Position numbers and translations under genes: made by a program
In this document: positions 15,760 through 39,560 of the stretch, piece by piece
Layout of the letters: each line of letters begins with the position of its first letter
Position numbering within the stretch: the stretch's first letter is position 1
The notes under the pieces: model-generated
Databases searched by the model: none
Seen by the model: only the letters and a program-made list of their open reading frames with translations
What the model was told of the DNA's origin: nothing
Assembly: GCA_002269645.1 (NCBI GenBank)
Contig: NIVC01000719.1
Span: 300,020 to 364,019, forward strand
DNA: 64,000 nt
Source of the DNA: Macrostomum lignano
Taxonomy: Eukaryota
Direction: 5' to 3'

Positions 15760-15844
15760 CACAGGATTTCTTGACAAATGACTATTCTGATATTTTTGTG
15801 GCCATATAAAAATACAAGTAAAATCGAAAAAATATATTTCAGAG

Positions 15845-15917
15845 CGACCACGCCAGGACTCGAACCTGGAATCTTCTGATCCGTAGTCAGACGCGTTATC
15901 CATTGCGCCACGCGGCC
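15845..15917 (-). tRNA. tRNA-Arg-ACG: tRNA-Arg(ACG) copy 2
   Basis: Canonical 73-nt GGCCGCGTGGCGCAATGG...CTACGGA...GGTTCGAGTCC...GGTCG with downstream T-run. Confidence 0.97.
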
Positions 15918-16157
15918 CTCGGCAGCAGGACTGCCTCAGTCTGTCAAATAAAATTGAAAATTACTAAATCTGATTCCCAGATTTATTTGACCTGCTGTCG
16001 TCAGCCAGAGCCGTCACAAAGTGGTTATGTGCGGCAGGTTTTCTGTATTCAGATATCTTCGTATACCTGCTGAACCTGTAGCATTGTCGCTTGCCTTAAT
16101 AACCTTTTCCATTCTCTCCATTGCAATACTAAATAGCTGACTGTGAGCATGATATGG

Positions 16158-16819
16158 GCCAGTCACACCTGATAATGATCAAGCCAGGGACACCTAATAA
16201 TGATCAGGCCAGTCACACCTGATAATGATCAAGCCAGTCACACCTGATAATGATCAAGCCAGTCACACCTGATAATGATCAGGCCAGTCACACCTGATAA
16301 TGATCAAGCCAGTCACACCTGATAATGATCAAGCCAGTCACACCTGATAATGATCAAGCCAGTCACACCTGATAATGATCAGGCCAGTCACACCTGATAA
16401 TGATCAAGCCAGTCACACCTGATAATGATCAAGCCAGTCACACCTGATAATGATCAAGCCAGTCACACCTGATAATGATCAAGCCAGTCACACCTGATAA
16501 TGATCAAGCCAGTCACACCTGATAATGATCAAGCCAGTCACACCTGATAATGATCAAGCCAGTCACACCTGATAATGATCAAGCCAGTCACACCTGATAA
16601 TGATCAAGCCAGTCACACCTGATAATGCTCAAGCCAGTCACACCTGACAATGATCAAGCCAGTCACACCTGATAACGATCAAGTCAGTCACACCTGATAA
16701 TGATCAAGCCAGTCACACCTGATAATGATCAAGCCAGTCACACCTGATAATGATCAAGCCAGTCACACCTGATAATGATCAAGCCAGTCACACCTGACAA
16801 TGATCAAGCCAGTCACACC
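16158..16819. repeat. Satellite B block 1 (25-bp)
   Basis: gccagtcacacctgataatgatcaa units, about 26 copies. Confidence 0.95.
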
Positions 16820-17269
16820 CACAGATACTAGAATAACTAGATAGGCCACTCGGCACATTTGCGTGCCAGCTACTTTCAGTTCAGTAGTAAGTTAAACAGA
16901 AGCATTTTAATGTATTCTTAAAGCCAGAGCTTATTTATTGGCTCTTACCCCCCCCCCAAGCTAATAAACCCTCAAACTCCTCATAGAACCTCTACCCCCG
17001 GCCCGCGACCTAATTTTATTACCTTCTTCGGTTGTTCCAGCCTAAATCTGCCTTGTACATTTCAGTGGCTTATGTATATTATGGCTGAACCAATTGGCAA
17101 GCTGTTTACGCCTGCAAGCTTGGGCTTCTAAACTTATCAAAGTCATTTCAGCTGCCTTATTCTTATAAAATAGCTTATGTATTCTTCTTTGCTACTGAAC
17201 TGAAAGTAGAAAGCTGTTTTGCCAAGTATAAATGCCAGAATGGCCCATCTAGTTATTCTAGTATCTGTG
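16820..17269. mobile_element. hAT-type MITE copy 1 (450 bp)
   Basis: TIR cacagatactagaataactagat(a/g)ggcca (28 of 29 match), 8-bp TSD gtcacacc on both sides, subterminal IR ctactttcagttcagtag. Confidence 0.92.
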
Positions 17270-17544
17270 GTCACACCTGATATTGATTGAGACAGTCAAC
17301 AAGTAAGCCATTTTAACAATTGAAAATTAATTGTATGAAATATTTTAGTAGTATTACATGCAATTTTTTCAATATATTTTATGAGTTCAACGTGAATTAA
17401 AAATCTTTTTTCTATCATTAGTTAATCGTACCTTTGAGCCTATAATTAAATAAATATATAATACACAGATACAACCAGTTTTTGCAGCTTATATCACAGC
17501 TTGTCAAAAGATGTTCACTCTTGATTACTCATTAAAGTAGTATC

Positions 17545-18495
17545 CTAGTTGCAGTTGTCAGCTGAGCACACTGAGCAGTCTCCATAGTTAGGCAAGGCGG
17601 TGAGGCTTGAGCAGCCGTCCTTGTCCAGGTAGCAGGCCCTGTAGTACTGAAAATGATTTTGGCCAATCATTTTATATTACTGCCACAAGTAGTAAGAGGT
17701 CGCAACAGGTCATGTGTTTAAACGGATTTAGACAAAACTGCAATTCGACACTGGTAGAATTCCCGTCATACCGATTTCCTGCCGCCGATGGCAACTGAGA
17801 ACCTGATGCAGTAGTCATAACCTGCCACACAGTTTACACTGGCTGCTCTGCCATCTGGCGATGCAGCGTTGGATGCTGAGTGACATCGAAGTCCAGCTGC
17901 GGGGTCTGGGCGAATCGGGGTATGTTGTGAGCTGTGACTGGGTGCTGACACTACCGTTCTGACTGTGACTGAGTGCTGTGGCTGTGACTGTGGCTGTGAC
18001 AGTGACAGTGACTGTGAATGTGACTGTGACACCGTGACTGTGACTGTGACACCGTGACTGTGACTGTGACACCGTGACTGTGACTGTGACACCGTGACTG
18101 TGACTGTGACACCGTGACTGTGACAATGCGCCTGTAAATGTTACTGTGACAGTGACAGTGACTGCGATTGTGACTATGATACTGACTGTGACTGTGACAC
18201 TGTGACTGTGACACCGTGACTGTGACAATGCGCCTGTAAATGTTACTGTGACAGTGACAGTGACTGCGACTGTGACTATGATACTGTGACTGTGACTGTG
18301 ACTGTGACTGTGACAGTGACTATGGCTGTGACAGCAGTCTCCCATGATGCAAACAATGTAAGTGACTCTTTTCATTTCACACTAACCTACAAGTATCTCT
18401 CAGAACTCAAATCATAACGCCAGATTACAAAACTCACCGATTGCATTGAAAGCTAGCATTAGCAGAATAGCAGAGCAGGCAGTTTGTCTCAGCAT
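17545..18495 (-). CDS. Secreted three-finger/Ly6(LU)-like 8-Cys protein, copy 1 (94 aa, 3 exons)
   Basis: Exons 18495-18438, 17896-17772, 17646-17545, GT-AG, phases 1 and 0. Translation MLRQTACSAILLMLAFNAI AGLRCHSASNAASPDGRAASVNCVAGYDYCIRFSVAIGGRKS YYRACYLDKDGCSSLTALPNYGDCSVCSADNCN*; same exon layout as the paralog at 40800-42055. Confidence 0.88.
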
Positions 18496-18570
18496 TCTGT
18501 GGCTCTTCTGTCTAAACTTTTCTGTCCGCGGAGAATAGCGAATAAAGAATGCCAGTTTCGCTGTCAGAAC

Positions 18571-18578
18571 CTTAAATA
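18571..18578 (-). promoter_or_regulatory. Putative TATA-like element of the three-finger gene (present in every unit)
   Basis: Minus strand TATTTAAG 76 nt upstream of the ATG; motif only, no transcript evidence. Confidence 0.4.
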
Positions 18579-18736
18579 GCTGGGGCGCTCAGCTTGAACC
18601 AACCAGTACGCCAGTACTGCATTGTGCGTGCGTGCGGCATATAGACAGAACTTCCACATCTGATGTACAACTGCAGTCAGAGGTGCAATATTGAACTCTA
18701 AAATTACTATTTACTAAAAATATTAATAGCTCAGAG

Positions 18737-18809
18737 CGACCACGCCAGGACTCGAACCTGGAAGCTTCTGATCCGTAGTCAGACGCGTTATCCATTGCGC
18801 CACGCGGCC
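18737..18809 (-). tRNA. tRNA-Arg-ACG: tRNA-Arg(ACG) copy 3, A46C variant
   Basis: Variable loop reads AGCTT instead of AGATT; otherwise canonical; T5 terminator. Confidence 0.93.
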
Positions 18810-18992
18810 CTCGAAATTTGGTAGTCCTTGAGCATTCCTTAACGATTTATGTGTTTGATCAGACGCCAATCTCTTAATGGGTACGATTTCAGTAGTAATG
18901 ATAGAGTATGTTAAATCTTTTTAGGAAAAACTAAATTTAAGAGACATTTGAAAGAGGAAATTCGAAAAGGTCATCCAAATCTGAATGCACCA

Positions 18993-19708
18993 CTGACACC
19001 TATTCCATGCCTCACTGACACCTATTCCAATGCCTCACTGACACATATTCCAATGCCTCACTGACACCTATTCCATGCCTCACTGATACCTATTCCATGC
19101 CTCACTGACACCTATTCCAATGCCTCACTGACACATATTCCAATGCCTCACTGACACCTATTCCATGCCTCACTGACACCTATTCCAATGCCTCACTGAC
19201 ACCTATTCCAATGCAGCACTGACACCTATTCCAATGCCTCACTGATACCTATTCCAATGCCTCACTGACACATATTCCAATGCCTCACTGACACCTATTC
19301 CATGCCTCACTGGCACCTATTCCAATGCCTCACTGACACCTATTCCAATGCAGCACTGACACCTATTCCAATGCCTCACTGATACCTATTCCAATGCCTC
19401 ACTGACACCTATTCCAATGCAGCACTGACACCTATTCCAATGCAGCACTGACATCTATTCCAATGCAGCACTGACATCTATTCCAATGCCTCACTGACAC
19501 CTATTCCAATGCCTCACTGACACCTATTCCAATGCCTCGCTGACACCTATTCCAATGCCTCACTGACACCTATTCCAATGCCTCACTGACACCTATTCCA
19601 ATGCAGCACTGACACCTATTCCAATGCCTTACTGACATCTATTCCAATGCAGCACTGACATCTATTCCAATGCAGCACTGACACCCATTTCAATGCAGCA
19701 CTGACACC
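18993..19708. repeat. Satellite A block 2
   Basis: 22/23-bp ctgacacctattcca(a)tgcctca units. Confidence 0.95.
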
Positions 19709-19793
19709 CACAGAATTTCTTGACAAATGACTATTCTGATATTTTTGTGGCCATATAAAAATACAAGTAAAATCGAAAAAATATATTTCAGAG

Positions 19794-19866
19794 CGACCAC
19801 GCCAGGACTCGAACCTGGAATCTTCTGATCCGTAGTCAGACGCGTTATCCATTGCGCCACGCGGCC
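19794..19866 (-). tRNA. tRNA-Arg-ACG: tRNA-Arg(ACG) copy 4
   Basis: Canonical sequence with terminator. Confidence 0.97.
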
Positions 19867-20106
19867 CTCGGCAGCAGGACTGCCTCAGTCTGTCAAATAA
19901 AATTGAAAATTACTAAATCTGATTCCCAGATTTATTTGACCTGCTGTCGTCAGCCAGAGCCGTCACAAAGTGGTTATGTGCGGCAGGTTTTCTGTATTCA
20001 GATATCTTCGTATACCTGCTGAACCTGTAGCATTGTCGCTTGCCTTAATAACCTTTTCCATTCTCTCCATTGCAATACTAAATAGCTGACTGTGAGCATG
20101 ATATGG

Positions 20107-20468
20107 GCCAGTCACACCTGATAATGATCAAGCCAGTCACACCTGATAATGATCAAGCCAGTCACACCTGATAATGATCAGGCCAGTCACACCTGATAAT
20201 GATCAAGCCAGTCACACCTGATAATGATCAAGCCAGTCACACCTGATAATGATCAGGCCAGTCGCACCTGATAATGATCAAGCCAGTCACACCTGATAAT
20301 GATCAAGCCAGTCACACCTGATAATGATCAAGCCAGTCACACCTGATAATGATCAAGCCAGTCACACCTGATAATGATCAAGCCAGTCACACCTGATAAT
20401 GATCAAGCCAGTCACACCTGATAATGCTCAAGCCAGTCACACCTGAATATGATCAAGCCAGTCACACC
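20107..20468. repeat. Satellite B block 2
   Basis: 25-bp units, about 14 copies. Confidence 0.95.
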
Positions 20469-20919
20469 CACAGATACTAGAATAACTAGATAGGCCACTC
20501 GGCACATTTGAGTGCCAGCTACTTTCAGTTCAGTAGTAAGTTAAACAGAAGCATTTTAATGTATTCTTAAAGCCAGAGCTTATTTATTGGCTCTTACCCC
20601 CCCCCCCAAGCTAATAAACCCTCAAACTCCTCATAGAACCTCTACCCCCGGCCCGCGACCTAATTTTATTACCTTCTTCGGTTGTTCCAGCCTAAATCTG
20701 CCTTGTACATTTCAGTGGCTTATGTATATTATGGCTGAACCAATTGGCAAGCTGTTTACGCCTGCAAGCTTGGGCTTCTAAACTTATCAAAGTCATTTCA
20801 GCTGCCTTATTCTTATAAAATAGCTTATGTATTCTTCTTTGCTACTGAACTGAAAGTAGAAAGCTGTTTTGCCAAGTATAAATGCCAGAATGGCCCATCT
20901 AGTTATTCTAGTATCTGTG
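20469..20919. mobile_element. hAT-type MITE copy 2
   Basis: Same TIRs and gtcacacc TSD as copy 1. Confidence 0.92.
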
Positions 20920-21194
20920 GTCACACCTGATATTGATTGAGACAGTCAACAAGTAAGCCATTTTAACAATTGAAAATTAATTGTATGAAATATTTTAGTA
21001 GTATTACATGCAATTTTTTCAATATATTTTATGAGTTCAACGTGAATTAAAAATCTTTTTTCTATCATTAGTTAATCGTACCTTTGAGCCTATAATTAAA
21101 TAAATATATAATACACAGATACAACCAGTTTTTGCAGCTTATATCACAGCTTGTCAAAAGATGTTCACTCTTGATTACTCATTAAAGTAGTATC

Positions 21195-22145
21195 CTAGTT
21201 GCAGTTGTCAGCTGAGCACACTGAGCAGTCTCCATAGTTAGGCAAGGCGGTGAGGCTTGAGCAGCCGTCCTTGTCCAGGTAGCAGGCCCTGTAGTACTGA
21301 AAATGATTTTGGCCAATCATTTTATATTACTGCCACAAGTAGTAAGAGGTCGCAACAGGTCATGTGTTTAAACGGATTTAGACAAAACTGCAATTCGACA
21401 CTGGTAGAATTCCCGTCATACCGATTTCCTGCCGCCGATGGCAACTGAGAACCTGATGCAGTAGTCATAACCTGCCACACAGTTTACACTGGCTGCTCTG
21501 CCATCTGGCGATGCAGCGTTGGATGCTGAGTGACATCGAAGTCCAGCTGCGGGGTCTGGGCGAATCGGGGTATGTTGTGAGCTGTGACTGGGTGCTGACA
21601 CTACCGTTCTGACTGTGACTGAGTGCTGTGGCTGTGACTGTGGCTGTGACAGTGACAGTGACTGTGAATGTGACTGTGACACCGTGACTGTGACTGTGAC
21701 ACCGTGACTGTGACTGTGACACCGTGACTGTGACTGTGACACCGTGACTGTGACTGTGACACCGTGACTGTGACAATGCGCCTGTAAATGTTACTGTGAC
21801 AGTGACAGTGACTGCGATTGTGACTATGATACTGACTGTGACTGTGACACTGTGACTGTGACACCGTGACTGTGACAATGCGCCTGTAAATGTTACTGTG
21901 ACAGTGACAGTGACTGCGACTGTGACTATGATACTGTGACTGTGACTGTGACTGTGACTGTGACAGTGACTATGGCTGTGACAGCAGTCTCCCATGATGC
22001 AAACAATGTAAGTGACTCTTTTCATTTCACACTAACCTACAAGTATCTCTCAGAACTCAAATCATAACGCCAGATTACAAAACTCACCGATTGCATTGAA
22101 AGCTAGCATTAGCAGAATAGCAGAGCAGGCAGTTTGTCTCAGCAT
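21195..22145 (-). CDS. Secreted three-finger-like protein, copy 2
   Basis: Exact 3650-bp offset of copy 1; exons 22145-22088, 21546-21422, 21296-21195. Confidence 0.88.
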
Positions 22146-22386
22146 TCTGTGGCTCTTCTGTCTAAACTTTTCTGTCCGCGGAGAATAGCGAATAAAGAAT
22201 GCCAGTTTCGCTGTCAGAACCTTAAATAGCTGGGGCGCTCAGCTTGAACCAACCAGTACGCCAGTACTGCATTGTGCGTGCGTGCGGCATATAGACAGAA
22301 CTTCCACATCTGATGTACAACTGCAGTCAGAGGTGCAATATTGAACTCTAAAATTACTATTTACTAAAAATATTAATAGCTCAGAG

Positions 22387-22459
22387 CGACCACGCCAGGA
22401 CTCGAACCTGGAAGCTTCTGATCCGTAGTCAGACGCGTTATCCATTGCGCCACGCGGCC
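22387..22459 (-). tRNA. tRNA-Arg-ACG: tRNA-Arg(ACG) copy 5, A46C variant
   Basis: As copy 3. Confidence 0.93.
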
Positions 22460-22642
22460 CTCGAAATTTGGTAGTCCTTGAGCATTCCTTAACGATTTAT
22501 GTGTTTGATCAGACGCCAATCTCTTAATGGGTACGATTTCAGTAGTAATGATAGAGTATGTTAAATCTTTTTAGGAAAAACTAAATTTAAGAGACATTTG
22601 AAAGAGGAAATTCGAAAAGGTCATCCAAATCTGAATGCACCA

Positions 22643-23358
22643 CTGACACCTATTCCATGCCTCACTGACACCTATTCCAATGCCTCACTGACACATATTC
22701 CAATGCCTCACTGACACCTATTCCATGCCTCACTGATACCTATTCCATGCCTCACTGACACCTATTCCAATGCCTCACTGACACATATTCCAATGCCTCA
22801 CTGACACCTATTCCATGCCTCACTGACACCTATTCCAATGCCTCACTGACACCTATTCCAATGCAGCACTGACACCTATTCCAATGCCTCACTGATACCT
22901 ATTCCAATGCCTCACTGACACATATTCCAATGCCTCACTGACACCTATTCCATGCCTCACTGGCACCTATTCCAATGCCTCACTGACACCTATTCCAATG
23001 CAGCACTGACACCTATTCCAATGCCTCACTGATACCTATTCCAATGCCTCACTGACACCTATTCCAATGCAGCACTGACACCTATTCCAATGCAGCACTG
23101 ACATCTATTCCAATGCAGCACTGACATCTATTCCAATGCCTCACTGACACCTATTCCAATGCCTCACTGACACCTATTCCAATGCCTCGCTGACACCTAT
23201 TCCAATGCCTCACTGACACCTATTCCAATGCCTCACTGACACCTATTCCAATGCAGCACTGACACCTATTCCAATGCCTTACTGACATCTATTCCAATGC
23301 AGCACTGACATCTATTCCAATGCAGCACTGACACCCATTTCAATGCAGCACTGACACC
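22643..23358. repeat. Satellite A block 3
   Basis: Same variant order as block 2 (3650-bp offset). Confidence 0.95.
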
Positions 23359-23443
23359 CACAGAATTTCTTGACAAATGACTATTCTGATATTTTTGTGG
23401 CCATATAAAAATACAAGTAAAATCGAAAAAATATATTTCAGAG

Positions 23444-23516
23444 CGACCACGCCAGGACTCGAACCTGGAATCTTCTGATCCGTAGTCAGACGCGTTATCC
23501 ATTGCGCCACGCGGCC
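23444..23516 (-). tRNA. tRNA-Arg-ACG: tRNA-Arg(ACG) copy 6
   Basis: Canonical sequence with terminator. Confidence 0.97.
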
Positions 23517-23756
23517 CTCGGCAGCAGGACTGCCTCAGTCTGTCAAATAAAATTGAAAATTACTAAATCTGATTCCCAGATTTATTTGACCTGCTGTCGT
23601 CAGCCAGAGCCGTCACAAAGTGGTTATGTGCGGCAGGTTTTCTGTATTCAGATATCTTCGTATACCTGCTGAACCTGTAGCATTGTCGCTTGCCTTAATA
23701 ACCTTTTCCATTCTCTCCATTGCAATACTAAATAGCTGACTGTGAGCATGATATGG

Positions 23757-24118
23757 GCCAGTCACACCTGATAATGATCAAGCCAGTCACACCTGATAAT
23801 GATCAAGCCAGTCACACCTGATAATGATCAGGCCAGTCACACCTGATAATGATCAAGCCAGTCACACCTGATAATGATCAAGCCAGTCACACCTGATAAT
23901 GATCAGGCCAGTCGCACCTGATAATGATCAAGCCAGTCACACCTGATAATGATCAAGCCAGTCACACCTGATAATGATCAAGCCAGTCACACCTGATAAT
24001 GATCAAGCCAGTCACACCTGATAATGATCAAGCCAGTCACACCTGATAATGATCAAGCCAGTCACACCTGATAATGCTCAAGCCAGTCACACCTGAATAT
24101 GATCAAGCCAGTCACACC
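23757..24118. repeat. Satellite B block 3
   Basis: 25-bp units. Confidence 0.95.
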
Positions 24119-24567
24119 CACAGATACTAGAATAACTAGATAGGCCACTCGGCACATTTGAGTGCCAGCTACTTTCAGTTCAGTAGTAAGTTAAACAGAA
24201 GCATTTTAATGTATTCTTAAAGCCAGAGCTTATTTATTGGCTCTTACCCCCCCCCAAGCTAATAAACCCTCAAACTCCTCATAGAACCTCTACCCCCGGC
24301 CCGCGACCTAATTTTATTACCTTCTTCGGTTGTTCCAGCCTAAATCTGCCTTGTACATTTCAGTGGCTTATGTATATTATGGCTGAACCAATTGGCAAGC
24401 TGTTTACGCCTGCAAGCTTGGGCTTCTAAACTTATCAAAGTCATTTCAGCTGCCTTATTCTTATAAAATAGCTTATGTATTCTTCTTTGCTACTGAACTG
24501 AAAGTAGAAAGCTGTTTTGCCAAGTATAAATGCCAGAATGGCCCATCTAGTTATTCTAGTATCTGTG
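24119..24567. mobile_element. hAT-type MITE copy 3
   Basis: Same TIRs; right junction has an extra gtcactg before gtcacacc. Confidence 0.9.
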
Positions 24568-24850
24568 GTCACTGGTCACACCTGATATTGATTGAGACAG
24601 TCAACAAGTAAGCCATTTTAACAATTGAAAATTAATTGTATGAAATATTTTAGTAGTATTACATGCAATTTTTTCAATATATTTTATGAGTTCAACGTGA
24701 ATTAAAAATCTTTTTTTCTATCATTAGTTAATCGTACCTTTGAGCCTATAATTAAATAAATATATAATACACAGATACAACCAGTTTTTGCAGCTTATAT
24801 CACAGCTTGTCAAAAGATGTTCACTCTTGATTACTCATTAAAGTAGTATC

Positions 24851-25963
24851 CTAGTTGCAGTTGTCAGCTGAGCACACTGAGCAGTCTCCATAGTTAGGCA
24901 AGGCGGTGAGGCTTGAGCAGCCGTCCTTGTCCAGGTAGCAGGCCCTGTAGTACTGAAAATGATTTTGGCCAATCATTTTATATTACTGCCACAAGTAGTA
25001 AGAGGTCGCAACAGGTCATGTGTTTAAACGGATTTAGACAAAACTGCAATTCGACACTGGTAGAATTCCCGTCATACCGATTTCCTGCCGCCGATGGCAA
25101 CTGAGAACCTGATGCAGTAGTCATAACCTGCCACACAGTTTACACTGGCTGCTCTGCCATCTGGCGATGCAGCGTTGGATGCTGAGTGACATCGAAGTCC
25201 AGCTGCGGGGTCTGGGCGAATCGGGGTATGTTGTGAGCTGTGACTGGGTGCTGACACTACCGTTCTGACTGTGACTGAGTGCTGTGGCTGTGACTGTGGC
25301 TGTGACAGTGACAGTGACTGTGAATGTGACTGTGACACCGTGACTGTGACTGTGACACCGTGACTGTGACTGTGACACCGTGACTGTGACTGTGACACCG
25401 TGACTGTGACTGTGACACCGTGACTGTGACTGTGACACCGTGACTGTGACTGTGACACCGTGACTGTGACTGTGACACCGTGACTGTGACAATGCGCCTG
25501 TAAATGTTACTGTGACAGTGACAGTGACTGCGATTGTGACTATGATACTGACTGTGACTGTGACACTGTGACTGTGACACCGTGACTGTGACAATGCGCC
25601 TGTAAATGTTACTGTGACAGTGACAGTGACTGCGATTGTGACTATGATACTGACTGTGACTGTGACACTGTGACTGTGACACCGTGACTGTGACAATGCG
25701 CCTGTAAATGTTACTGTGACAGTGACAGTGACTGCGACTGTGACTATGATACTGTGACTGTGACTGTGACTGTGACTGTGACAGTGACTATGGCTGTGAC
25801 AGCAGTCTCCCATGATGCAAACAATGTAAGTGACTCTTTTCATTTCACACTAACCTACAAGTATCTCTCAGAACTCAAATCATAACGCCAGATTACAAAA
25901 CTCACCGATTGCATTGAAAGCTAGCATTAGCAGAATAGCAGAGCAGGCAGTTTGTCTCAGCAT
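24851..25963 (-). CDS. Secreted three-finger-like protein, copy 3
   Basis: Exons 25963-25906, 25202-25078, 24952-24851; same protein as copy 1, longer intron-1 repeat. Confidence 0.88.
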
Positions 25964-26204
25964 TCTGTGGCTCTTCTGTCTAAACTTTTCTGTCCGCGGA
26001 GAATAGCGAATAAAGAATGCCAGTTTCGCTGTCAGAACCTTAAATAGCTGGGGCGCTCAGCTTGAACCAACCAGTACGCCAGTACTGCATTGTGCGTGCG
26101 TGCGGCATATAGACAGAACTTCCACATCTGATGTACAACTGCAGTCAGAGGTGCAATATTGAACTCTAAAATTACTATTTACTAAAAATATTAATAGCTC
26201 AGAG

Positions 26205-26277
26205 CGACCACGCCAGGACTCGAACCTGGAAGCTTCTGATCCGTAGTCAGACGCGTTATCCATTGCGCCACGCGGCC
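26205..26277 (-). tRNA. tRNA-Arg-ACG: tRNA-Arg(ACG) copy 7, A46C variant
   Basis: As copy 3. Confidence 0.93.
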
Positions 26278-26460
26278 CTCGAAATTTGGTAGTCCTTGAG
26301 CATTCCTTAACGATTTATGTGTTTGATCAGACGCCAATCTCTTAATGGGTACGATTTCAGTAGTAATGATAGAGTATGTTAAATCTTTTTAGGAAAAACT
26401 AAATTTAAGAGACATTTGAAAGAGGAAATTCGAAAAGGTCATCCAAATCTGAATGCACCA

Positions 26461-27788: not shown

Positions 27789-27873
27789 CACAGAATTTCT
27801 TGACAAATGACTATTCTGATATTTTTGTGGCCATATAAAAATACAAGTAAAATCGAAAAAATATATTTCAGAG

Positions 27874-27946
27874 CGACCACGCCAGGACTCGAACCTGGAA
27901 TCTTCTGATCCGTAGTCAGACGCGTTATCCATTGCGCCACGCGGCC
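27874..27946 (-). tRNA. tRNA-Arg-ACG: tRNA-Arg(ACG) copy 8
   Basis: Canonical sequence with terminator. Confidence 0.97.
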
Positions 27947-28186
27947 CTCGGCAGCAGGACTGCCTCAGTCTGTCAAATAAAATTGAAAATTACTAAATCT
28001 GATTCCCAGATTTATTTGACCTGCTGTCGTCAGCCAGAGCCGTCACAAAGTGGTTATGTGCGGCAGGTTTTCTGTATTCAGATATCTTCGTATACCTGCT
28101 GAACCTGTAGCATTGTCGCTTGCCTTAATAACCTTTTCCATTCTCTCCATTGCAATACTAAATAGCTGACTGTGAGCATGATATGG

Positions 28187-28548
28187 GCCAGTCACACCTG
28201 ATAATGATCAAGCCAGTCACACCTGATAATGATCAAGCCAGTCACACCTGATAATGATCAGGCCAGTCACACCTGATAATGATCAAGCCAGTCACACCTG
28301 ATAATGATCAAGCCAGTCACACCTGATAATGATCAGGCCAGTCGCACCTGATAATGATCAAGCCAGTCACACCTGATAATGATCAAGCCAGTCACACCTG
28401 ATAATGATCAAGCCAGTCACACCTGATAATGATCAAGCCAGTCACACCTGATAATGATCAAGCCAGTCACACCTGATAATGATCAAGCCAGTCACACCTG
28501 ATAATGCTCAAGCCAGTCACACCTGACAATGATCAAGCCAGTCACACC
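28187..28548. repeat. Satellite B block 4
   Basis: 25-bp units. Confidence 0.95.
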
Positions 28549-28997
28549 CACAGATACTAGAATAACTAGATAGGCCACTCGGCACATTTGAGTGCCAGCT
28601 ACTTTCAGTTCAGTAGTAAGTTAAACAGAAGCATTTTAATGTATTCTTAAAGCCAGAGCTTATTTATTGGCTCTTACCCCCCCCCAAGCTAATAAACCCT
28701 CAAACTCCTCATAGAACCTCTACCCCCGGCCCGCGACCTAATTTTATTACCTTCTTCGGTTGTTCCAGCCTAAATCTGCCTTGTACATTTCAGTGGCTTA
28801 TGTATATTATGGCTGAACCAATTGGCAAGCTGTTTACGCCTGCAAGCTTGGGCTTCTAAACTTATCAAAGTCATTTCAGCTGCCTTATTCTTATAAAATA
28901 GCTTATGTATTCTTCTTTGCTACTGAACTGAAAGTAGAAAGCTGTTTTGCCAAGTATAAATGCCAGAATGGCCCATCTAGTTATTCTAGTATCTGTG
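28549..28997. mobile_element. hAT-type MITE copy 4
   Basis: Same TIRs and gtcacacc TSD. Confidence 0.92.
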
Positions 28998-29273
28998 GTC
29001 ACACCTGATATTGATTGAGACAGTCAACAAGTAAGCCATTTTAACAATTGAAAATTAATTGTATGAAATATTTTAGTAGTATTACATGCAATTTTTTCAA
29101 TATATTTTATGAGTTCAACGTGAATTAAAAATCTTTTTTTCTATCATTAGTTAATCGTACCTTTGAGCCTATAATTAAATAAATATATAATACACAGATA
29201 CAACCAGTTTTTGCAGCTTATATCACAGCTTGTCAAAAGATGTTCACTCTTGATTACTCATTAAAGTAGTATC

Positions 29274-30332
29274 CTAGTTGCAGTTGTCAGCTGAGCACAC
29301 TGAGCAGTCTCCATAGTTAGGCAAGGCGGTGAGGCTTGAGCAGCCGTCCTTGTCCAGGTAGCAGGCCCTGTAGTACTGAAAATGATTTTGGCCAATCATT
29401 TTATATTACTGCCACAAGTAGTAAGAGGTCGCAACAGGTCATGTGTTTAAACGGATTTAGACAAAACTGCAATTCGACACTGGTAGAATTCCCGTCATAC
29501 CGATTTCCTGCCGCCGATGGCAACTGAGAACCTGATGCAGTAGTCATAACCTGCCACACAGTTTACACTGGCTGCTCTGCCATCTGGCGATGCAGCGTTG
29601 GATGCTGAGTGACATCGAAGTCCAGCTGCGGGGTCTGGGCGAATCGGGGTATGTTGTGAGCTGTGACTGGGTGCTGACACTACCGTTCTGACTGTGACTG
29701 AGTGCTGTGGCTGTGACTGTGGCTGTGACAGTGACAGTGACTGTGAATGTGACTGTGACACCGTGACTGTGACTGTGACACCGTGACTGTGACTGTGACA
29801 CCGTGACTGTGACTGTGACACCGTGACTGTGACTGTGACACCGTGACTGTGACTGTGACACCGTGACTGTGACAATGCGCCTGTAAATGTTACTGTGACA
29901 GTGACAGTGACTGCGATTGTGACTATGATACTGACTGTGACTGTGACACTGTGACTGTGACACCGTGACTGTGACAATGCGCCTGTAAATGTTACTGTGA
30001 CAGTGACAGTGACTGCGATTGTGAACATGATACTGACTGTGACTGTGACACCGTGACTGTGACAATGCGCCTGTAAATGTTACTGTGACAGTGACAGTGA
30101 CTGCGACTGTGACTATGATACTGTGACTGTGACTGTGACTGTGACTGTGACAGTGACTATGGCTGTGACAGCAGTCTCCCATGATGCAAACAATGTAAGT
30201 GACTCTTTTCATTTCACACTAACCTACAAGTATCTCTCAGAACTCAAATCATAACGCCAGATTACAAAACTCACCGATTGCATTGAAAGCTAGCATTAGC
30301 AGAATAGCAGAGCAGGCAGTTTGTCTCAGCAT
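29274..30332 (-). CDS. Secreted three-finger-like protein, copy 4
   Basis: Exons 30332-30275, 29625-29501, 29375-29274; same protein as copy 1. Confidence 0.88.
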
Positions 30333-30573
30333 TCTGTGGCTCTTCTGTCTAAACTTTTCTGTCCGCGGAGAATAGCGAATAAAGAATGCCAGTTTCGCTG
30401 TCAGAACCTTAAATAGCTGGGGCGCTCAGCTTGAACCAACCAGTACGCCAGTACTGCATTGTGCGTGCGTGCGGCATATAGACAGAACTTCCACATCTGA
30501 TGTACAACTGCAGTCAGAGGTGCAATATTGAACTCTAAAATTACTATTTACTAAAAATATTAATAGCTCAGAG

Positions 30574-30646
30574 CGACCACGCCAGGACTCGAACCTGGAA
30601 GCTTCTGATCCGTAGTCAGACGCGTTATCCATTGCGCCACGCGGCC
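30574..30646 (-). tRNA. tRNA-Arg-ACG: tRNA-Arg(ACG) copy 9, A46C variant
   Basis: As copy 3. Confidence 0.93.
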
Positions 30647-30829
30647 CTCGAAATTTGGTAGTCCTTGAGCATTCCTTAACGATTTATGTGTTTGATCAGA
30701 CGCCAATCTCTTAATGGGTACGATTTCAGTAGTAATGATAGAGTATGTTAAATCTTTTTAGGAAAAACAAAATTTAAGAGACATTTGAAAGAGGAAATTC
30801 GAAAAGGTCATCCAAATCTGAATGCACCA

Positions 30830-31546
30830 CTGACACCTATTCCATGCCTCACTGACACCTATTCCAATGCCTCACTGACACCTATTCCAATGCCTCACTG
30901 ACACCTATTCCATGCCTCACTGATACCTATTCCAATGCCTCACTGACACCTATTCCAATGCAGCACTGACACCTATTCCAATGCCTCACTGATACCTATT
31001 CCAATGCCTCACTGACACCTATTCCAATGCCTCACTGACACCTATTCCAATGCCTCACTGACACATATTCCAATGCCTCACTGACACCTATTCCATGCCT
31101 CACTGACACCTATTCCAATGCCTCACTGACACCTATTCCAATGCAGCACTGACACCTATTCCAATGCCTCACTGATACCTATTCCAATGCCTCACTGACA
31201 CATATTCCAATGCCTCACTGACACCTATTCCATGCCTCACTGACACCTATTCCAATGCAGCACTGACACCTATTCCAATGCCTCACTGACACCTATTCCA
31301 ATGCCTCACTGACACCTATTCCAATGCAGCACTGACACCTATTCCAATGCAGCACTGACACCTATTCCAATGCAGCACTGACATCTATTCCAATGCCTCA
31401 CTGACACCTATTCCAATGCCTCACTGACACCTATTCCAATGCCTCACTGACACCTATTCCAATGCAGCACTGACACCTATTCCAATGCAGCACTGACACC
31501 TATTCCAATGCAGCACTGACACCCATTTCAATGCAGCACTGACACC
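30830..31546. repeat. Satellite A block 5
   Basis: 22/23-bp units. Confidence 0.95.
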
Positions 31547-31631
31547 CACAGAATTTCTTGACAAATGACTATTCTGATATTTTTGTGGCCATATAAAAAT
31601 ACAAGTAAAATCGAAAAAATATATTTCAGAG

Positions 31632-31704
31632 CGACCACGCCAGGACTCGAACCTGGAATCTTCTGATCCGTAGTCAGACGCGTTATCCATTGCGCCACGC
31701 GGCC
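31632..31704 (-). tRNA. tRNA-Arg-ACG: tRNA-Arg(ACG) copy 10
   Basis: Canonical; 5' flank type shared only with copy 13. Confidence 0.97.
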
Positions 31705-31916
31705 CTCGGCATTTGGCAGTCCTTGAGCACGGATTTCTAATTTTCTTTTCAAAATCACAGCTGCTGCTAAGCATGTTTGATCACGCGGCCTGCATGTGAA
31801 TTTGCGAGGCTTGGCTGGGAATGTTGAAATCGGAAACGACTTTAAGAGTCTCTTGGTAAGCAGCCATTTTTAAAGGCAACAACGGCATTTCACTTTTGTC
31901 CATTGATACTTGCTCT

Positions 31917-32980
31917 AATGTCCACCGACACCAACTTTAATGTCCACCGACTCAAACTTTAATGTCCACCGACACCAACTTTAATGTCCACCGACTCCAA
32001 CTTTAATGTCCACCGATACCTAGTTAAATGTCCACCGGCCGACACCAACTTTAATGTCCACCGACACCTACTTTAATGTCCACCGACACCTACTTTAATG
32101 TCCACCGACTCCAACTTTAATGTCCACCGACACCTACTTTAGTGTCCACCGACACCTACTTTAATGTCCACCGACTCCAACTTTAATGTCCACCGACTCC
32201 AACTTTAATGTCCACCGACACCAACCTTAATGTCCACCGACACCAACTTTAATGTCCACCGACACCTACTTTAATGTCCACCGACACCTACTTTAATGTC
32301 CACCGACACCTACTTTGATGTCCACCGACACCAACTTTAATGTCCACCGACACCTACTTTAATGTCCACCGACACCTACTTTAATGTCCACCGACACCTA
32401 CTTTAATGTCCACCGACACCTACTTTAATGTCCACCGACACCAACTTTAATGTCCACCGACACCAACTTTAATGTCCACCGACACCTACTTTAATGTCCA
32501 CCGACACCAACTTTAATGTCCACCGACTCCAACTTTAATGTCCACCGACACCAACTTTAATGTCCACCGACTCCAACTTTAATGTCCACCGACACCAACT
32601 TTAATGTCCACCGACTCCAACTTTAATGTCCACCGACACCAACTTTAATGTCCACCGACACCAACTTTAATGTCCACCGACACCTACTTTAATGTCCACC
32701 GACACCTACTTTAATGTCCACCGATACCTACTTTAATGTCCACCGACACCAACTTTAATGTCCACCGACACCTACTTTAATGTCCACCGACACCTACTTT
32801 AATGTCCACCGACACCTACTTTAATGTCCACCGACACCTACTTTAATGTCCACCGACACCTACTTTAATGTCCACCGACACCAACTTTAATGTCCACCGA
32901 CACCAACTTTTATGTCCACCGACACCTACTTTAATGTCCACCGACACCTACTTTGATGTCCACCGACACCTACTTTAATA
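31917..32980. repeat. Satellite C (22-bp), about 48 copies
   Basis: aatgtccaccgacacc(a/t)acttt units. Confidence 0.95.
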
Positions 32981-33116
32981 TCTAGTAACACCCACTTTAA
33001 AGTCCCACTGGCGAGAAAGGTCTTTGGCCTAACCCGCCCTATACTCAAACTATGACGCTTTTGACTTTCCTACAGCGAGAGCTCGAGTTCCTGCTAAGCG
33101 GCTGACTTCTAAAATT

Positions 33117-34283: not shown

Positions 34284-35406
34284 ATGACTGCGGCCCTTCA
34301 ACTGTTGCTGCTGGCCGTCACCTGCGTTTACCGTCTCCGCTGCCCGTCTCTGCCGCGTCATCTTGGAGCTGGAAGCCGGTTTGAGGCGACCTCGCCGAGT
34401 ACAGGGTGCTATCAACGTTCAAGGCTAAGAGCAAGTTCGTCTGTCTTAGCAAATCTCAGGCGGCGAAGGCTCATGTGGCGTCTTTCGACACTGCATCGGG
34501 CGACTGCGCCCTGCTGGAGTGCGACCGTGGCAGCAGGGACCACTGCAGGAAGTGCCGGCACGAAGGAGATCCGAGCTTACCGATACTCTGGGTGAGTGAG
34601 GCGTTTCTGTCAGTTTCCTTGTAGATCTGGGTGAGTGAGGCGTTTCTGTCAGTTTCTTGTAGTTCTGGGTGAGTGAGGCGTTTCTGTCAGTTTCCTTGTA
34701 GTTCTGGGTGAGTGAGGCGTTTCTGTCAGTTTCCTTGTAGTTCTGGGTGAGTGAGGCGTTTCTGTCAGTTTCCTTGTAGTTCTGGGTGAGTGATGCGTTT
34801 GTGTCAGTTTCCTTGTAGTTCTGGGTGAGTGAGGCGTTTGTGTCAGTTTCCTTGTAGATCTGGGTGAGTGAGGCGTTTCTGTCAGTTTCCTTGTAGTTCT
34901 GGGTGAGTGAGGCGTTTCTGTCAGTTTCCTTGTAGCTCTGGGTGAGTGAGGCGTTTGTGTCAGTTTCCTTGTAGTTCTGGGTGAGTGAGGCGTTTCTGTC
35001 AGTTGCCTACTTCGTCAGTGGCCTGCTGGAAGCACTCGAAAGCTTCAATCGATTCCGAACCCTCAAATCGCAGGTCAAGGTGCCGGACAGCTGCTGGAAG
35101 ACTTTCCTTTTTCTTTTCCTTTTCCTCGATGACTCTGTCAGCTTCGACCGGAACTGGTTGGAGTACGCGAGCAGGCTCGGTCAGGGCGAGAGTCGCAACT
35201 ACTGGTTGCGTCTGGAGCAGCTCCACCAGCTCACTAAGGCTTGAGTGTGGAGAGTCCGCTGGGAGTTCAGCGACTGGAATGACAGCTGGTGCTGGGATGA
35301 GAATGCTCCGTTCTCTGTAGGCTCAGCGGCCGACAAGTACAGGTGCTCGATGGGACCGCTGAGCGTGAGCAGGTCGAATGTCGGACAAAGCACCGGAGGA
35401 TATTAG
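34284..35406 (+). pseudogene. PAN/apple-like plus fibrinogen-related domain (FReD) gene, disrupted and truncated
   Basis: Signal-like MTAALQLLLLAVTCV, frameshift near 34385, YRVLSTFKAKSKFVC...SFDTASGDCALLEC (PAN-like), then DDSVSFDRNWLEYASRLGQGESRNYWLRLEQLHQLT and WRVRWEFSDWND..FSVGSAADKYRCSMG (FReD motifs). In-frame TGA at 35242; C-terminal half of the domain absent. Confidence 0.75.
34592..35002. repeat. 39-bp minisatellite containing splice donor and acceptor, 10.5 copies
   Basis: gtgagtgaggcgtttctgtcagtttccttgtag(t/a)tctgg units. Confidence 0.95.
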
Positions 35407-35474
35407 TATCATGTAATGAACAACATGCAGTTCAGCACTAGCGACTCTGATAACGATAATTGGTTCTATGGAAA

Positions 35475-36061
35475 CTCACTGACACCTATTCCAATGCCTC
35501 ACCGACACCTATTTCAATGCCTCACTGACGCCTATTTCAATGCCTCACTGACACCTATTTCAATGCCTCACTGACGCCTATTTCAATGCCTCACTGACGC
35601 CTATTTCAATGCCTCACTGACACCTATTTCAATGCCTCACTGACGCCTATTTCAATGCCTCACTGACACCTATTTCAATGCCTCACTGACACCTATTCCA
35701 ATGCCTCACTGACGCCTATTTCAATGCCTCACTGACGCCTATTTCAATGCCTCACTGACACCTATTCCAATGCCTCACTGACACCTATTCCAATGCCTCA
35801 CTGACACCTATTCCAATGCCTCACTGACACCTATTCCAATGCCTCACTGACACCTATTCCAATGCCTCACTGACACCTATTCCAATGCCTCACTGACACC
35901 TATTCCAATACCTCACTGACACCTATTCCAATGCCTCACTGACACCAATTCCAATGCCTCACTGACACCTATTCCAATGCCTCACTGACACCTATTCCAA
36001 TACCTCACTGACACCTATTCCAATGCCTCACTGACACCTATTCCAATGCATTACTGACACC
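35475..36061. repeat. Satellite A block 6
   Basis: 23-bp units with their own variants (gacgcc, atttcaat). Confidence 0.95.
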
Positions 36062-36136
36062 CACTAGATGTCTTGTCGAACCAATATTCAGATAATTTTC
36101 GCGGCTATATTGAAGAATCGAAAAAAAATTGCAGAG

Positions 36137-36209
36137 CGACCACGCCAGGACTCGAACCTGGAATCTTCTGATCCGTAGTCAGACGCGTTATCCATTGCGC
36201 CACGCGGCC
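36137..36209 (-). tRNA. tRNA-Arg-ACG: tRNA-Arg(ACG) copy 11
   Basis: Canonical; diverged 3' flank. Confidence 0.97.
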
Positions 36210-36447: not shown

Positions 36448-36838
36448 GCCAGTCACACCTGATAATGATCAAGCCAGGGACACCTAATAATGATCAGGCC
36501 AGTCACACCTGATAATGCTCAAGCCAGTCACACCTGATAATGCTCAAGCCAGTCACACCTGATAATGATCAAGCCAGTCACACCCGATAATGATCAAGCC
36601 AGTCACACCCGATAATGATCAAGCCAGTCACACCTGATAATGATTAAGCCAGTCACACCTGATAATGATCAAGCCAGTCACACCTGATAATGATCAAGCC
36701 AGGGACACCTGATAATGATCAAGCCAGGGACACCTGATAATGATCAAGCCAGGGACACCTGATAATGATCAAGCCAGTCACACCTGATAATGATCAAGCC
36801 GGTCACACCTGATAATGATCAAGCCAGTCACACCTGAT
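36448..36838. repeat. Satellite B block 5 (MITE-free)
   Basis: 25-bp units ending in a single gtcacacc at 36827-36834 followed by tgatattgattgagac. Confidence 0.95.
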
Positions 36839-37097
36839 ATTGATTGAGACAGTCAACAAGTAAGCCATTTTAACAATTGAAAATTAATTGTATGAAATAT
36901 TTTAGTAGTACATGCAATTTTTTCAATATATTCTTTGAGTTCAACGTGAATTAAAAATCTTTTTTCTATCATTAGTTAATCGTACCTTAAAGCCTACAAT
37001 AAATAAATATATAATACACAGATACAACCAGTTTTTGCAGCTTATATCAAAGCTTGTCAAAAGATGTTCACTCTTGATTACTCATTAAAGTAGTATC

Positions 37098-38110
37098 CTA
37101 GTTGCAGTTGTCAGCTGAGCACACTGAGCAGTCTCCATAGTTAGGCAAGGCGGTGAGGCTTAAGCAGCCGTCCTTGTCCAGGTAGCAGGCCCTGTAGTAC
37201 TGAAAATGTTTTTGGCCAATCAATTTTCTATTTAATTTTATAATATAAACTTCAGTTTCACTACTGCCACAAGTAGTAAGAGGTCGCGACATGTGTTTAA
37301 ACGGATTTAGACAAAACTGCAATTCGACACTGGTAGAATTCACGTCATACCGATTTCCTGCCGCCGATGGCAACTGAGAACCTGATGCAGTAGTCATAAC
37401 CTGCCACACAGTTTACACTGGCTGCTCTGCCGTCTGGCGATGGAGCGTTGGATGCTGAGTGACATCGAAGTCCAGCTGCGGGGTCTGGGCGAATCGGGGT
37501 ATGTTGTGAGCTGTGACTGGGTGCTGAAACTACCGTTCTGACTGTGACTGAGTGCTGTGGCTGTGACTGTGGCTGTGACAGTGACAGTGACTGTGAATGT
37601 GACTGTGACACCGTGACTGTGACTGTGACACCGTGACTGTGACTGTGACACCGTGACTGTGACTGTGACACCGTGACTGTGACTGTGACACCGTGACTGT
37701 GACTGTGACACCGTGACTGTGACAATGCGCCTGTAAATGTTACTGTGACAGTGACAGTGACTGCGATTGTGACTATGATACTGACTGTGACTGTGACACT
37801 GTGACTGTGACACCGTGACTGTGACACCGTGACTGTGACACCGTGACTGTGACTGTGACACCGTGACTGTGACAATGCGCCTGTAATTGTTAATGTGACA
37901 GTGACAGTGACTGCAATTGTGACTATGATACTGACTGTGACTGTGACAGCAGTCTCCCATGATGCAAACAATGTAAGTGACTCTTTTCATTTCACACTAA
38001 CCTACAAGTATCTCTCAGAACTCAAATCATAACGCCAGATTACAAAACTCACCGATTGCATTGAAAGCTAGCATTAGCAGAATAGCAGAGCAGGCAGTTT
38101 GTCTCAGCAT
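37098..38110 (-). CDS. Secreted three-finger-like protein, copy 5 (diverged)
   Basis: Exons 38110-38053, 37475-37351, 37199-37098; two amino-acid differences from copies 1-4 (NAPSP, GCLSL). Confidence 0.88.
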
Positions 38111-38350
38111 TCTGTGGCTCTTCTGTCTAAACTTTTCTGTCCGCGGAGAATAGCGAATAAAGAATGCCAGTTTCGCTGTCAGAACCTTAAATAGCTGGGG
38201 CGCTCAGCTTGAACCAACCAGTACGCCAGTACTGCATTGTGCGTGCGTACGGCATATAGACAGAACTTCCACATCTGATGTACAACTGCAGTCAGAGGTG
38301 CAATATTGAACTCTGAGATTACTATTTACAAAAATATTAATAGCTCAGAG

Positions 38351-38423
38351 CGACCACGCCAGGACTCGAACCTGGAATCTTCTGATCCGTAGTCAGACGC
38401 GTTATCCATTGCGCCACGCGGCC
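38351..38423 (-). tRNA. tRNA-Arg-ACG: tRNA-Arg(ACG) copy 12
   Basis: Canonical A46 although positionally equivalent to the A46C copies. Confidence 0.97.
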
Positions 38424-38604
38424 CTCGAAATTTGGTAGTCCTTGAGCATTCCTTAACGATTTATGTGTTTGATCAGACACCAATCCTTTAGTGGATAAGA
38501 TTTCAGTAGTATTGATGGAGCATGTTAAATCATTTTGAGGAAAAACTGAATTCCGGCGAAATTCGAAAGAGGAAATTCGAGGTCATACAAATCTGAATGC
38601 CACT

Positions 38605-39401
38605 TATTCCAATGCCTCACTGACATTCCAATACCTCACTGACACCTATTCCAATGCCTCACCGACACCTATTCCAATGCCTCACTGACACCTATTCCAA
38701 TGCCTCACTGACACCTATTCCATTGCCTCACTGACACCTATTCCAATGCCTCACTGACACCTATTCCAATGCCTCACTGACACCTATTCCAATGCCTCAC
38801 TGACACCTATTCCAATGCCTCACTGACACCAATTCCAATGCCTCACTGACACCTATTCCAATGCCTCACTGACACCTATTCCAATGCCTCACTGACATCC
38901 CAATACCTCACTGACACCTATTCCAATGCCTTGTCGACACTTATTCCAATGCCTCACTGACACCTATTCCATTGCCTCACTGACACCTATTCCAATGCCT
39001 CGCTGACACCTATTCCAATGCAGCACTGACACCGATTCCAATGCCTCACTGACACCTATTCCAATGCCTCACTGACACCAATTCCAATGCCTCACTGACA
39101 CCTATTCCAATGCCTCACTGACACCAATTCCAATGCCTCACTGACACCTATTCCAATGCCTCACTGACACCTATTCCAATGCCTCACTGACACCTATTCC
39201 AATGCCTCACTGACACCTATTCCAATGCCTCACTGACACCTATTCCAATGCCTCACTGACACCCTTTCCAATTCCTCACTGACACCTATTCCAATGCCTC
39301 ACTGACACCCTTTCCAATTCCTCACTGACACCTATTCTAATGTCTCACTGAAACCTATTCCAATGCCTCACTGACACCTATTCCAATGCAGCACTGACAC
39401 C
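38605..39401. repeat. Satellite A block 7
   Basis: 23-bp units. Confidence 0.95.
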
Positions 39402-39487
39402 CACAGGATTTCTTGACAAATGACTATTCTGATATTTTTGTGGCCATATAAAAATACAAGTAAAATCGAAAAAAATATATCTCAGAG

Positions 39488-39560
39488 CGACCACGCCAGG
39501 ACTCGAACCTGGAATCTTCTGATCCGTAGTCAGACGCGTTATCCATTGCGCCACGCGGCC
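39488..39560 (-). tRNA. tRNA-Arg-ACG: tRNA-Arg(ACG) copy 13
   Basis: Canonical sequence with terminator. Confidence 0.97.

Follow-up and report, generated by a model that had tools for sequence, protein, structure and literature searches.

Transfer RNA (tRNA) genes are said, in papers that cite Pratt-Hyatt et al. 2006, to act as breakpoints and fork barriers in yeasts. Yeast tRNA genes are approximately threefold enriched at evolutionary breakpoints (PMC2675101) and lie at the endpoints of spontaneous segmental duplications that arise through Pol32-dependent replication (PMC2518615), and a role as barriers to replication forks and as hot spots of recombination has been discussed for tRNA genes (PMC2652664, PMC2817429). 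In yeast, tRNA genes mark endpoints and near-identical copies are substrates for ectopic exchange, but the association is mostly statistical or runs through adjacent long terminal repeats (LTRs) (PMC2675101, PMC2817429, PMC2518615). Here we describe a window of 64,000 nucleotides from the flatworm Macrostomum lignano, the whole stretch of DNA that was analysed (assembly GCA_002269645.1, contig NIVC01000719.1, positions 300,020 to 364,019 of the forward strand), in which a segment of 3.6–4.4 kb is present four times head to tail and each joint lies within a gene for tRNA-Arg(ACG). Unlike in yeast, the exchange is resolved here to the tRNA gene itself, and both parental junctions survive in a sister locus.

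The Ser-Tyr-Tyr units of Arabidopsis and the 3.18-kb unit of Xenopus are kilobase-sized segments that bear tRNA genes and are repeated head to tail, a layout shared by the present array. The founding event of these two arrays is not known to have been resolved as far as the tRNA gene. Plant clusters of this kind are also the subject of PMC13437025. The arrays of Entamoeba consist of tandem units with at least one tRNA gene, a mini- or microsatellite in every intergenic stretch, and concerted evolution (PMC2652664), and the M. lignano locus resembles them in that its tRNA genes, too, are repeated as a unit with short tandem repeats between them. However, the Entamoeba arrays are ancient and genome-wide, comprise many isoacceptors and contain no protein gene. 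The M. lignano array, by contrast, is a young one of four units with a single isoacceptor; a protein gene and a miniature inverted-repeat transposable element (MITE) form part of it, and its founding joints are still readable. LTR-bounded amplifications of yeast that arise by non-allelic homologous recombination (NAHR) resemble this locus in joining a distal left flank to a proximal right flank inside a tract of identity, in regenerating the repeat intact, and in expanding once the unit has been duplicated (PMC11790251, PMC2518615). They differ in that the repeats here are 74-bp genes transcribed by RNA polymerase III (Pol III), with 80–85 bp of identity, rather than LTRs or kilobase-scale duplications, and in that the host is a flatworm with a recently duplicated genome. 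We class the locus as a case of NAHR in which tRNA genes serve as the direct repeats; events of this kind are known, and no new mechanism comes to light. Specific to it are the resolution of the founding exchange to the gene, the persistence of the parental state in the same genome, the carriage of a protein gene and a MITE, and the setting in a polyploid flatworm.

ARAGORN and Rfam identified 14 tRNA-Arg(ACG) genes in the window, every one on the minus strand and all densely surrounded by minisatellites. Flanks are named on the plus strand, where the left flank is the 3' trailer, with a T-run terminator on the gene strand, and the right flank is the 5' upstream region. Left flanks are of type L1 (copy 1), L12 (copies 3, 5, 7, 9 and 12), L13 (copies 2, 4, 6, 8, 10 and 13) or L11 (copy 11). 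Right flanks are of type A (CTCGAAATTTGGTAG..., running into a 23-mer satellite), B (CTCGGCAGCAGGACTGCC..., running into a 25-mer satellite) or C (CTCGGCATTTGGCAG..., running into a 22-mer satellite). We write a pairing of left and right types as, for example, L13-B, which is the chimeric type of copies 2 (15844–15917), 4 (19793–19866), 6 (23443–23516) and 8 (27873–27946). The L12-A type comprises copy 3 (18736–18809; Rfam 55.4 bits), copies 5 (22386–22459), 7 (26204–26277) and 9 (30573–30646), which have the same sequence as copy 3, and copy 12 (38350–38423). Copies 10 (31631–31704) and 13 (39487–39560) are L13-C, copy 11 (36136–36209) is L11-B and copy 1 (14852–14925) is L1-A; copy 14 (39944–40016) has flanks of its own and stands outside the amplification. 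Copies 11 to 13 form a second, un-amplified block (block 2) in the order tRNA, B, tRNA, A, tRNA, C, which is paralogous to the amplified block 1 and 95–96% identical to the array units over the segments aligned by BLAST.

A sequence-only reading of this DNA had claimed that copies 2, 4, 6 and 8 join the left flank of copies 10 and 13 to the right flank of copy 11, and the flank printout, a MAFFT alignment and a table of discriminating sites bear this out base for base. The left flank of all six L13 copies reads ...CACAG(G/A)ATTTCTTGACAAATGACTATTCTG...; beyond the gene, copies 2, 4, 6 and 8 continue as copy 11 does (CTCGGCAGCAGGACTGCC...), while copies 10 and 13 run into CTCGGCATTTGGCAG, and copy 11 is preceded by a different left flank. 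Within 84 bp on the left side, 17 substitution sites and 12 indel columns separate copy 11 from copies 10 and 13; the chimeric copies match copies 10 and 13 at all of these, the last at −5, and from +8, the first discriminating site on the right, they match copy 11 at more than 100 columns. Copies 11 and 13 share 85 bp of uninterrupted identity, made up of 4 bases, the 74-bp gene and 7 bases. The switch was likewise said to be limited to the tRNA and a few bases, and alignment of all 14 loci with their flanks confines it to −4 to +7 around the gene, rather than placing it well outside, for example in what the reading called satellite A.

The flanks on either side of the joint are closely matched to their sources. 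The L13 flanks of copies 4, 6 and 8 are identical to that of copy 10 (0/84 differences), with copy 2 differing at 1/84, copy 13 at 2/84 and copy 11 by approximately 24%; the B flanks of copies 2, 4, 6 and 8 are identical to one another (0/238), with copy 11 at 3.8%. L11 is an old paralogue of L13, approximately 75% identical and preceded by the same 23-mer satellite (35475–36061); at the switch, therefore, old paralogy gives way to near identity, and it is not unrelated sequence that becomes related. Each joint regenerates an intact tRNA gene with no base gained or lost. The junction genes have the canonical sequence and score 58.8 bits in Rfam (gathering score 29), equal to the parental copies, and an A6-7 run within approximately 20 nt in the plus-strand left flank supplies the T-run terminator on the gene strand; with cloverleaf, A and B boxes and terminator all in place, the junction copies are predicted to be functional eukaryotic tRNA genes. 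Chance, or a non-homologous duplication, is not a realistic explanation of such joints, because breaks in the same register would be required in two different 74-bp genes, and two instances of the pattern are found here.

The same assembly contains at least two more versions of this locus, one on contig NIVC01000596.1 (L001) and one on contig NIVC01000595.1 (L003). Over the stretch that begins with the furin-like and PP2C genes and ends at a 39-mer satellite, each is collinear with the window, L001 at 92–98% identity. Where the window has copies 1 to 10, L001 and L003 have three tRNA-Arg genes only, with the flank pairs L1-B, L12-A and L13-C only; this is the pre-amplification arrangement, with both parents of the L13-B joint. 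Collapsed assembly of the array was considered as a source of L001 and L003 and is ruled out, because the L1-B joint which they contain occurs nowhere in the window.

The sequence-only reading had gone on to suppose that unequal crossover between equivalents of copies 11 and 13 would generate exactly the amplified unit. If ta, tb and tc denote the first, middle and last tRNA genes of the three-gene block, the unit is indeed the interval from ta to tc with its joint in a tRNA gene, but the identity of one parent has to be revised. The B region of the array differs from that of L001 at 9 of 661 positions without gaps, and from that of block 2 (copy 11) at 17 of 652 positions with 40 gap columns in addition. 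Copy 11 is hence rejected as the actual B-side donor, and the supposed equivalent of copy 11 was a block-1 gene with the left flank of copy 1 (L1-B), lost from the window and kept in L001 and L003. L1-B and L13-C share an identity tract of 83 bp (2 bases, the 74-bp gene and 7 bases), which places the exchange interval at 15842–15924 in copy 2 and at 19791–19873 in copy 4, or at 19789–19873 when copy 4 is measured against copy 11. The junction therefore has the structure of an NAHR product: a distal left flank (L13, as in copies 10 and 13 and in L001_c) joined to a proximal right flank (B, as in copy 11 and L001_a), inside a tract identical in both parents (83 or 85 bp) without filler or loss, and with the parental junctions present in the un-duplicated loci L001 and L003.

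Copy 1, at the left edge of the cluster, is a second recombinant. It had been described as joining a unique left flank to the right flank typical of copies 3, 5, 7, 9 and 12, and so it does, the right flank reading CTCGAA(A/G)TTTGGTAG. The L1 flank is identical at 40 of 40 positions to that of the first gene of L001, which then runs into B; copy 1 instead fuses the trailer side of the ancestral first gene with the A flank that lies upstream of the middle gene. The exchange interval is 14850–14929, corresponding to the 80-bp identity tract between L1-B and L12-A. Copy 1 also has a private G10U change in the A box and D stem, through which the G10-C25 pair is lost and a conserved A-box position is hit, and it scores 49.1 bits in Rfam against 58.8; this recombinant first gene may be impaired in function.

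Could the repeats instead have been mis-joined or over-expanded during assembly? The units are approximately 99.9% identical in unique sequence, and several homopolymer indels are typical of long-read error, both of which would suit an artefact. However, false L13-B and L1-A joints would be two different mis-joins across only 80–85 identical bases, the L13-B joint recurs four times with satellite lengths specific to each unit, and the other arrangement is found independently in both L001 and L003. We regard an artefact as highly improbable.

Self-comparison with satellites masked delimits four array units at 15844–19792, 19793–23442, 23443–27872 and 27873–31630, each with two tRNA-Arg genes and one gene for a small, predicted secreted protein. 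Copy 2 forms the left end of the near-identical array, and units 2, 3 and 4 start with chimeric copies 4, 6 and 8 respectively. From left to right a unit comprises the L13-B tRNA gene, the B flank, the 25-mer satellite, a 451-bp insertion, approximately 660 bp of unique sequence, a TGACTG microsatellite, 400 bp of unique sequence, the L12-A tRNA gene, the A flank, the 23-mer satellite and the L13 flank. Copy 10, a distal gene of parental type, closes the array and is followed by the C flank, which is homologous to 39561–39756, and then by the 22-mer satellite (31705–33005). Self-comparison also shows that an older A flank, 23-mer satellite (15100–15759) and L13-type flank occupy 14926–15843, between copies 1 and 2. 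Unique sequence of approximately 2.2 kb differs among the units by 3 substitutions and a few indels, while satellite lengths differ, with 14.5 against 26.5 repeats of the 25-mer and 31.7 against 58.7 of the 23-mer, the last figure in unit 3, which also has a private 7-bp indel. Through the amplification, tRNA-Arg(ACG) genes in block 1 rose from 3 to 10 and copies of the protein gene from 1 to 4.

The insertion is a MITE. In unit 2 (20469–20919) it has perfect 23-bp terminal inverted repeats (CACAGATACTAGAATAACTAGAT) and an 8-bp target-site duplication (GTCACACC), and it has no coding capacity; it is presumably hAT-like, an assignment we make from the length of the duplication only. The copies in units 1, 3 and 4 lie at 16820–17269, 24119–24567 and 28549–28997, and the insertion point is the last repeat of the 25-mer satellite in all four units. 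The site is empty in four paralogous regions (block 2, L001, L003 and a further locus, L004), with a single GTCACACC in L001 and L003. The MITE is hence a time marker for the amplification. A second marker is A46C, which is present in the mutually identical copies 3, 5, 7 and 9, whereas copies 1 and 12 and the sister contigs lack it. Since the MITE and A46C are common to the four units, all units descend from one progenitor unit; conversely, the empty site and the lack of A46C argue that the B segment and middle tRNA gene of L001 were not derived from the present array units.

These markers bear on two further explanations. If the amplified state were the older, a single exchange between copy 1 (L1-A) and a gene of the copy-2 type (L13-B) would recreate L1-B together with one unit, so that deletion between copy 1 and a gene of the copy-8 type could have produced the three-gene state of L001 and L003, with breakpoints still in tRNA genes. 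Against such reversed polarity, the MITE site of L001 and L003 is cleanly empty, the target sequence occurring once, and both lack A46C, and block 2 has the same three-gene order (on the sister contigs, in the part from copy 12 to copy 14); more steps are also required than for simple retention, and we consider it very improbable. The presence of a MITE in every unit could also suggest that tRNA genes were spread by a transposon carrying them, or by retroposition as tRNA-derived short interspersed elements (SINEs). But the tRNA genes lack a SINE body, tail and target-site duplications, and the head, body and tail structure and dispersed sites of such elements are not found; the copies are instead strictly tandem with kilobases of collinear flanks, and the MITE has its own 8-bp duplication and ends well short of both tRNA genes, with 0.6 kb (in unit 1, 0.9 kb) to the upstream-side gene and approximately 1.5 kb to the other. 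This explanation can practically be dismissed.

Growth of the array was probably not a single step. The A flank of copy 1 is 5–5.6% divergent from those of the array, which differ among themselves by 0–0.6%, and this indicates at least two stages. Copies 4, 6 and 8 have an L13 flank of the copy-10 type, from which copy 2 deviates at −79 and in the last satellite repeats. If this difference goes back to the older copy, rather than to a later private mutation of copy 2, then the recent expansion began with a step whose bounds are −78 to +7 around a tRNA gene.

We consider it likely that the tandem array was founded by a homology-dependent exchange between tc and ta inside the tRNA gene, accompanied by an exchange between ta and tb and followed by expansion. 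The ancestral block would have held three co-oriented tRNA-Arg(ACG) genes in the order L1, ta, B, protein gene, L12, tb, A, 23-mer satellite, L13, tc, C. A misaligned exchange of tc with ta inside the 83 identical bases would have duplicated the interval from ta to tc in tandem, and left at the L13-B joint an intact tRNA gene with the 3' trailer and terminator side of tc and the upstream side of ta. An exchange of ta with tb within 80 identical bases would have created copy 1 (L1-A), with loss of the first B segment; we have placed it second, but these two events may have occurred in either order. After insertion of the MITE and the A46C change in tb, the remaining unit would have been expanded to four near-identical copies. 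Only the founding joint needs a breakpoint in a tRNA gene; later growth can take the whole unit as homology.

Regarding the route, unequal crossover between sister chromatids or homologues is the most likely and the one we prefer. The sequence-only reading had also named crossover, and homology-dependent exchange fits the joints; however, template switching and the excision and reintegration of a circle give the same product, and the three cannot be told apart from the sequence. In a replicative route, a fork stalled or broken at a Pol III-occupied tRNA gene would release an end that anneals to a neighbouring identical gene on the sister chromatid, and template switching, break-induced replication or single-strand annealing would re-copy the interval with the same junctions. 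The tract of only 80–85 bp favours such a route, as does the shared orientation of all 14 genes, since a fork arriving from one side would therefore meet every gene head-on; moreover, yeast tRNA genes pause forks and lie at the endpoints of Pol32-dependent duplications (PMC2518615; discussion in PMC2652664; PMC11790251). Against it, neither the site table nor the comparison of units revealed microhomology-only joints, inversions or template-switch scars. We regard replication as a possible but doubtful source of the array. Pol III-bound tRNA genes, as fork barriers, may have started the exchange.

In the third route, exchange between ta and tc would excise a circle bearing L13-B, which would be multiplied by rolling-circle replication and re-integrated by homology at the tc gene of an L1-A chromosome. 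This yields the exact order observed, with the older A flank of copy 1 followed by four near-identical units. However, more steps are needed, there is no evidence for circles, and the units vary in three satellites and a 7-bp indel, which is unexpected straight after rolling-circle copying; we think this route very unlikely.

Several points weigh against the history that we favour, in which crossover between tRNA genes founded the array. Among three or four versions of the locus, none showed the reciprocal product expected from exchange of tc with ta; L1-A is a deletion-type product, but from the pair ta and tb. Identity of 80–85 bp is short for efficient classical crossover and favours annealing or template-switch routes. 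All results come from a single long-read assembly, in which copy number may be mis-estimated. Relative to the window locus, L001 and L003 may be either allelic or homeologous: the genome of M. lignano, a hidden polyploid, was recently duplicated as a whole, and the assembly Mlig_3_7 keeps many duplicated contigs (PMC10468722). Finally, divergence between the window and L001 is uneven, at 19% in the A flank and 1.4% in unique B sequence; given this, and the concert between blocks described below, timing and polarity rest on parsimony and on the MITE and A46C markers.

In the 400 bp to the left of the middle tRNA gene, the two blocks of the window are 0.8% apart and L001 (15164–15563; block 1) is 1.0% apart from L004 (4722–5121; block 2), but the difference is 3–4% between the window (left flanks of copies 3 to 9 and of 38350) and L001 or L004. 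Blocks 1 and 2 thus undergo concerted evolution within a chromosome, and gene conversion is the suggested cause. The B flank has the opposite pattern, and the whole is therefore a conversion mosaic. Dating from divergence was given up in view of the 10-fold spread between segments and of conversion between blocks. The paralogy of blocks 1 and 2 itself begins, on its left side, at a tRNA gene.

The part of block 2 that was recovered from the sister contigs, from copy 12 to copy 14, is un-amplified, has the same flank types and is preceded by more than 3.8 kb of the 25-mer satellite. Satellite copy numbers differ enormously among the versions of the locus. This block-2 satellite has 16 repeats in the window (36448–36855) and more than 154 in L004 (1–3854). 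Similarly, the 39-mer satellite has 10.8 repeats in the window (34587–35008), against more than 71 in L001 (19110–21907) and more than 81 in L003 (8535–11727), in both of which it reaches the end of the locus. The first tRNA gene of L003 (3526–3599) has GCG as its anticodon where the others have ACG, its B box is altered by A58U, and two single bases are deleted immediately upstream of it; it is probably a decaying copy, and its counterpart in L001 has only C66U.

The 23-mer (AATGCCTCACTGACACCTATTCC) and 22-mer (TAATGTCCACCGACACCAACTT) satellites are related (15100–15759, 31916–33005 and the equivalent arrays), and each lies between the upstream flank of one tRNA gene and the trailer of the next. 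In this respect the cluster as a whole resembles an old array whose units are composed of a tRNA gene and a minisatellite. An ancient, larger array ending at copy 11, an idea prompted by the 23-mer satellite and L13-like flank which precede that copy, found no support: local alignment of 35009–35480 with the A flank, the C flank and the tRNA gene gave scores within the shuffled range.

The protein gene lies between the two tRNA genes of each unit. In unit 2 it occupies 21195–22145 on the minus strand, with three exons (22145–22088, 21555–21422 and 21296–21195), canonical splice sites and the TGACTG microsatellite in intron 1, and encodes 97 amino acids; further copies lie at 17545–18495, 24851–25963 and 29274–30332, and in block 2 at 37098–38110. 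The product is identical over its whole length (100%) to the annotated BOX15_Mlig009825g1 of a sister contig, the only annotated protein returned by the database search, and the gene apparently has no annotation on the window contig. It has 8 cysteines after a predicted signal peptide and ends in CSVCSADNCN, and it matches the Pfam family QVR (Quiver; PF17064) weakly, at E = 9.4e-4, over 81 of the 86 positions of the profile and with a score of 20.6 bits, which falls short of the curated cut-off (27.3). We describe it as a predicted secreted, Ly6/uPAR-like protein. A related terminal exon lies at 40800–41105 (minus strand), and no database record was found for the product of that open reading frame.

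Elsewhere in the window there are a furin-like subtilase with an S8 pro-domain and the start of the catalytic domain (2091–2660, minus strand), a PP2C phosphatase exon identified with Pfam (10777–11457, plus strand) and an ML-domain (E1_DerP2_DerF2) gene at about 44680–45513 (minus strand). Synteny of these three genes holds in every version of the locus, which makes them useful anchors for comparison between species. For the orthologous locus in other Macrostomum, the sole close match to the PP2C anchor outside M. lignano (80% identical) is on contigs of approximately 1.3 kb. A degenerate array of CTAATCCTAATCCCAACC and TAACCCTAATTCC at 48600–48938 resembles an interstitial telomere-like repeat.

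The locus offers a single-base view of how a tandem tRNA array can start, with the ancestral arrangement preserved alongside, and indicates that approximately 80 bp of identity suffices in an animal germ line. Copies of one locus in a hidden polyploid differ several-fold in tRNA gene number, which is of use for the annotation and assembly of this model flatworm and for understanding the evolution of tRNA gene copy number. A wider interpretation, which we hold to be improbable but worth stating, is that co-oriented, Pol III-occupied tRNA genes are recurrent initiators of recombination in a satellite-rich, recently duplicated genome, and that in Macrostomum genes are generally born, possibly under selection, through arrays seeded by tRNA genes. 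The present locus would then record two or more exchanges bounded by tRNA genes, namely L13-B, L1-A and perhaps, as a third, the older paralogy of blocks 1 and 2, and together these would have given rise to a young array that only one copy of the locus possesses.

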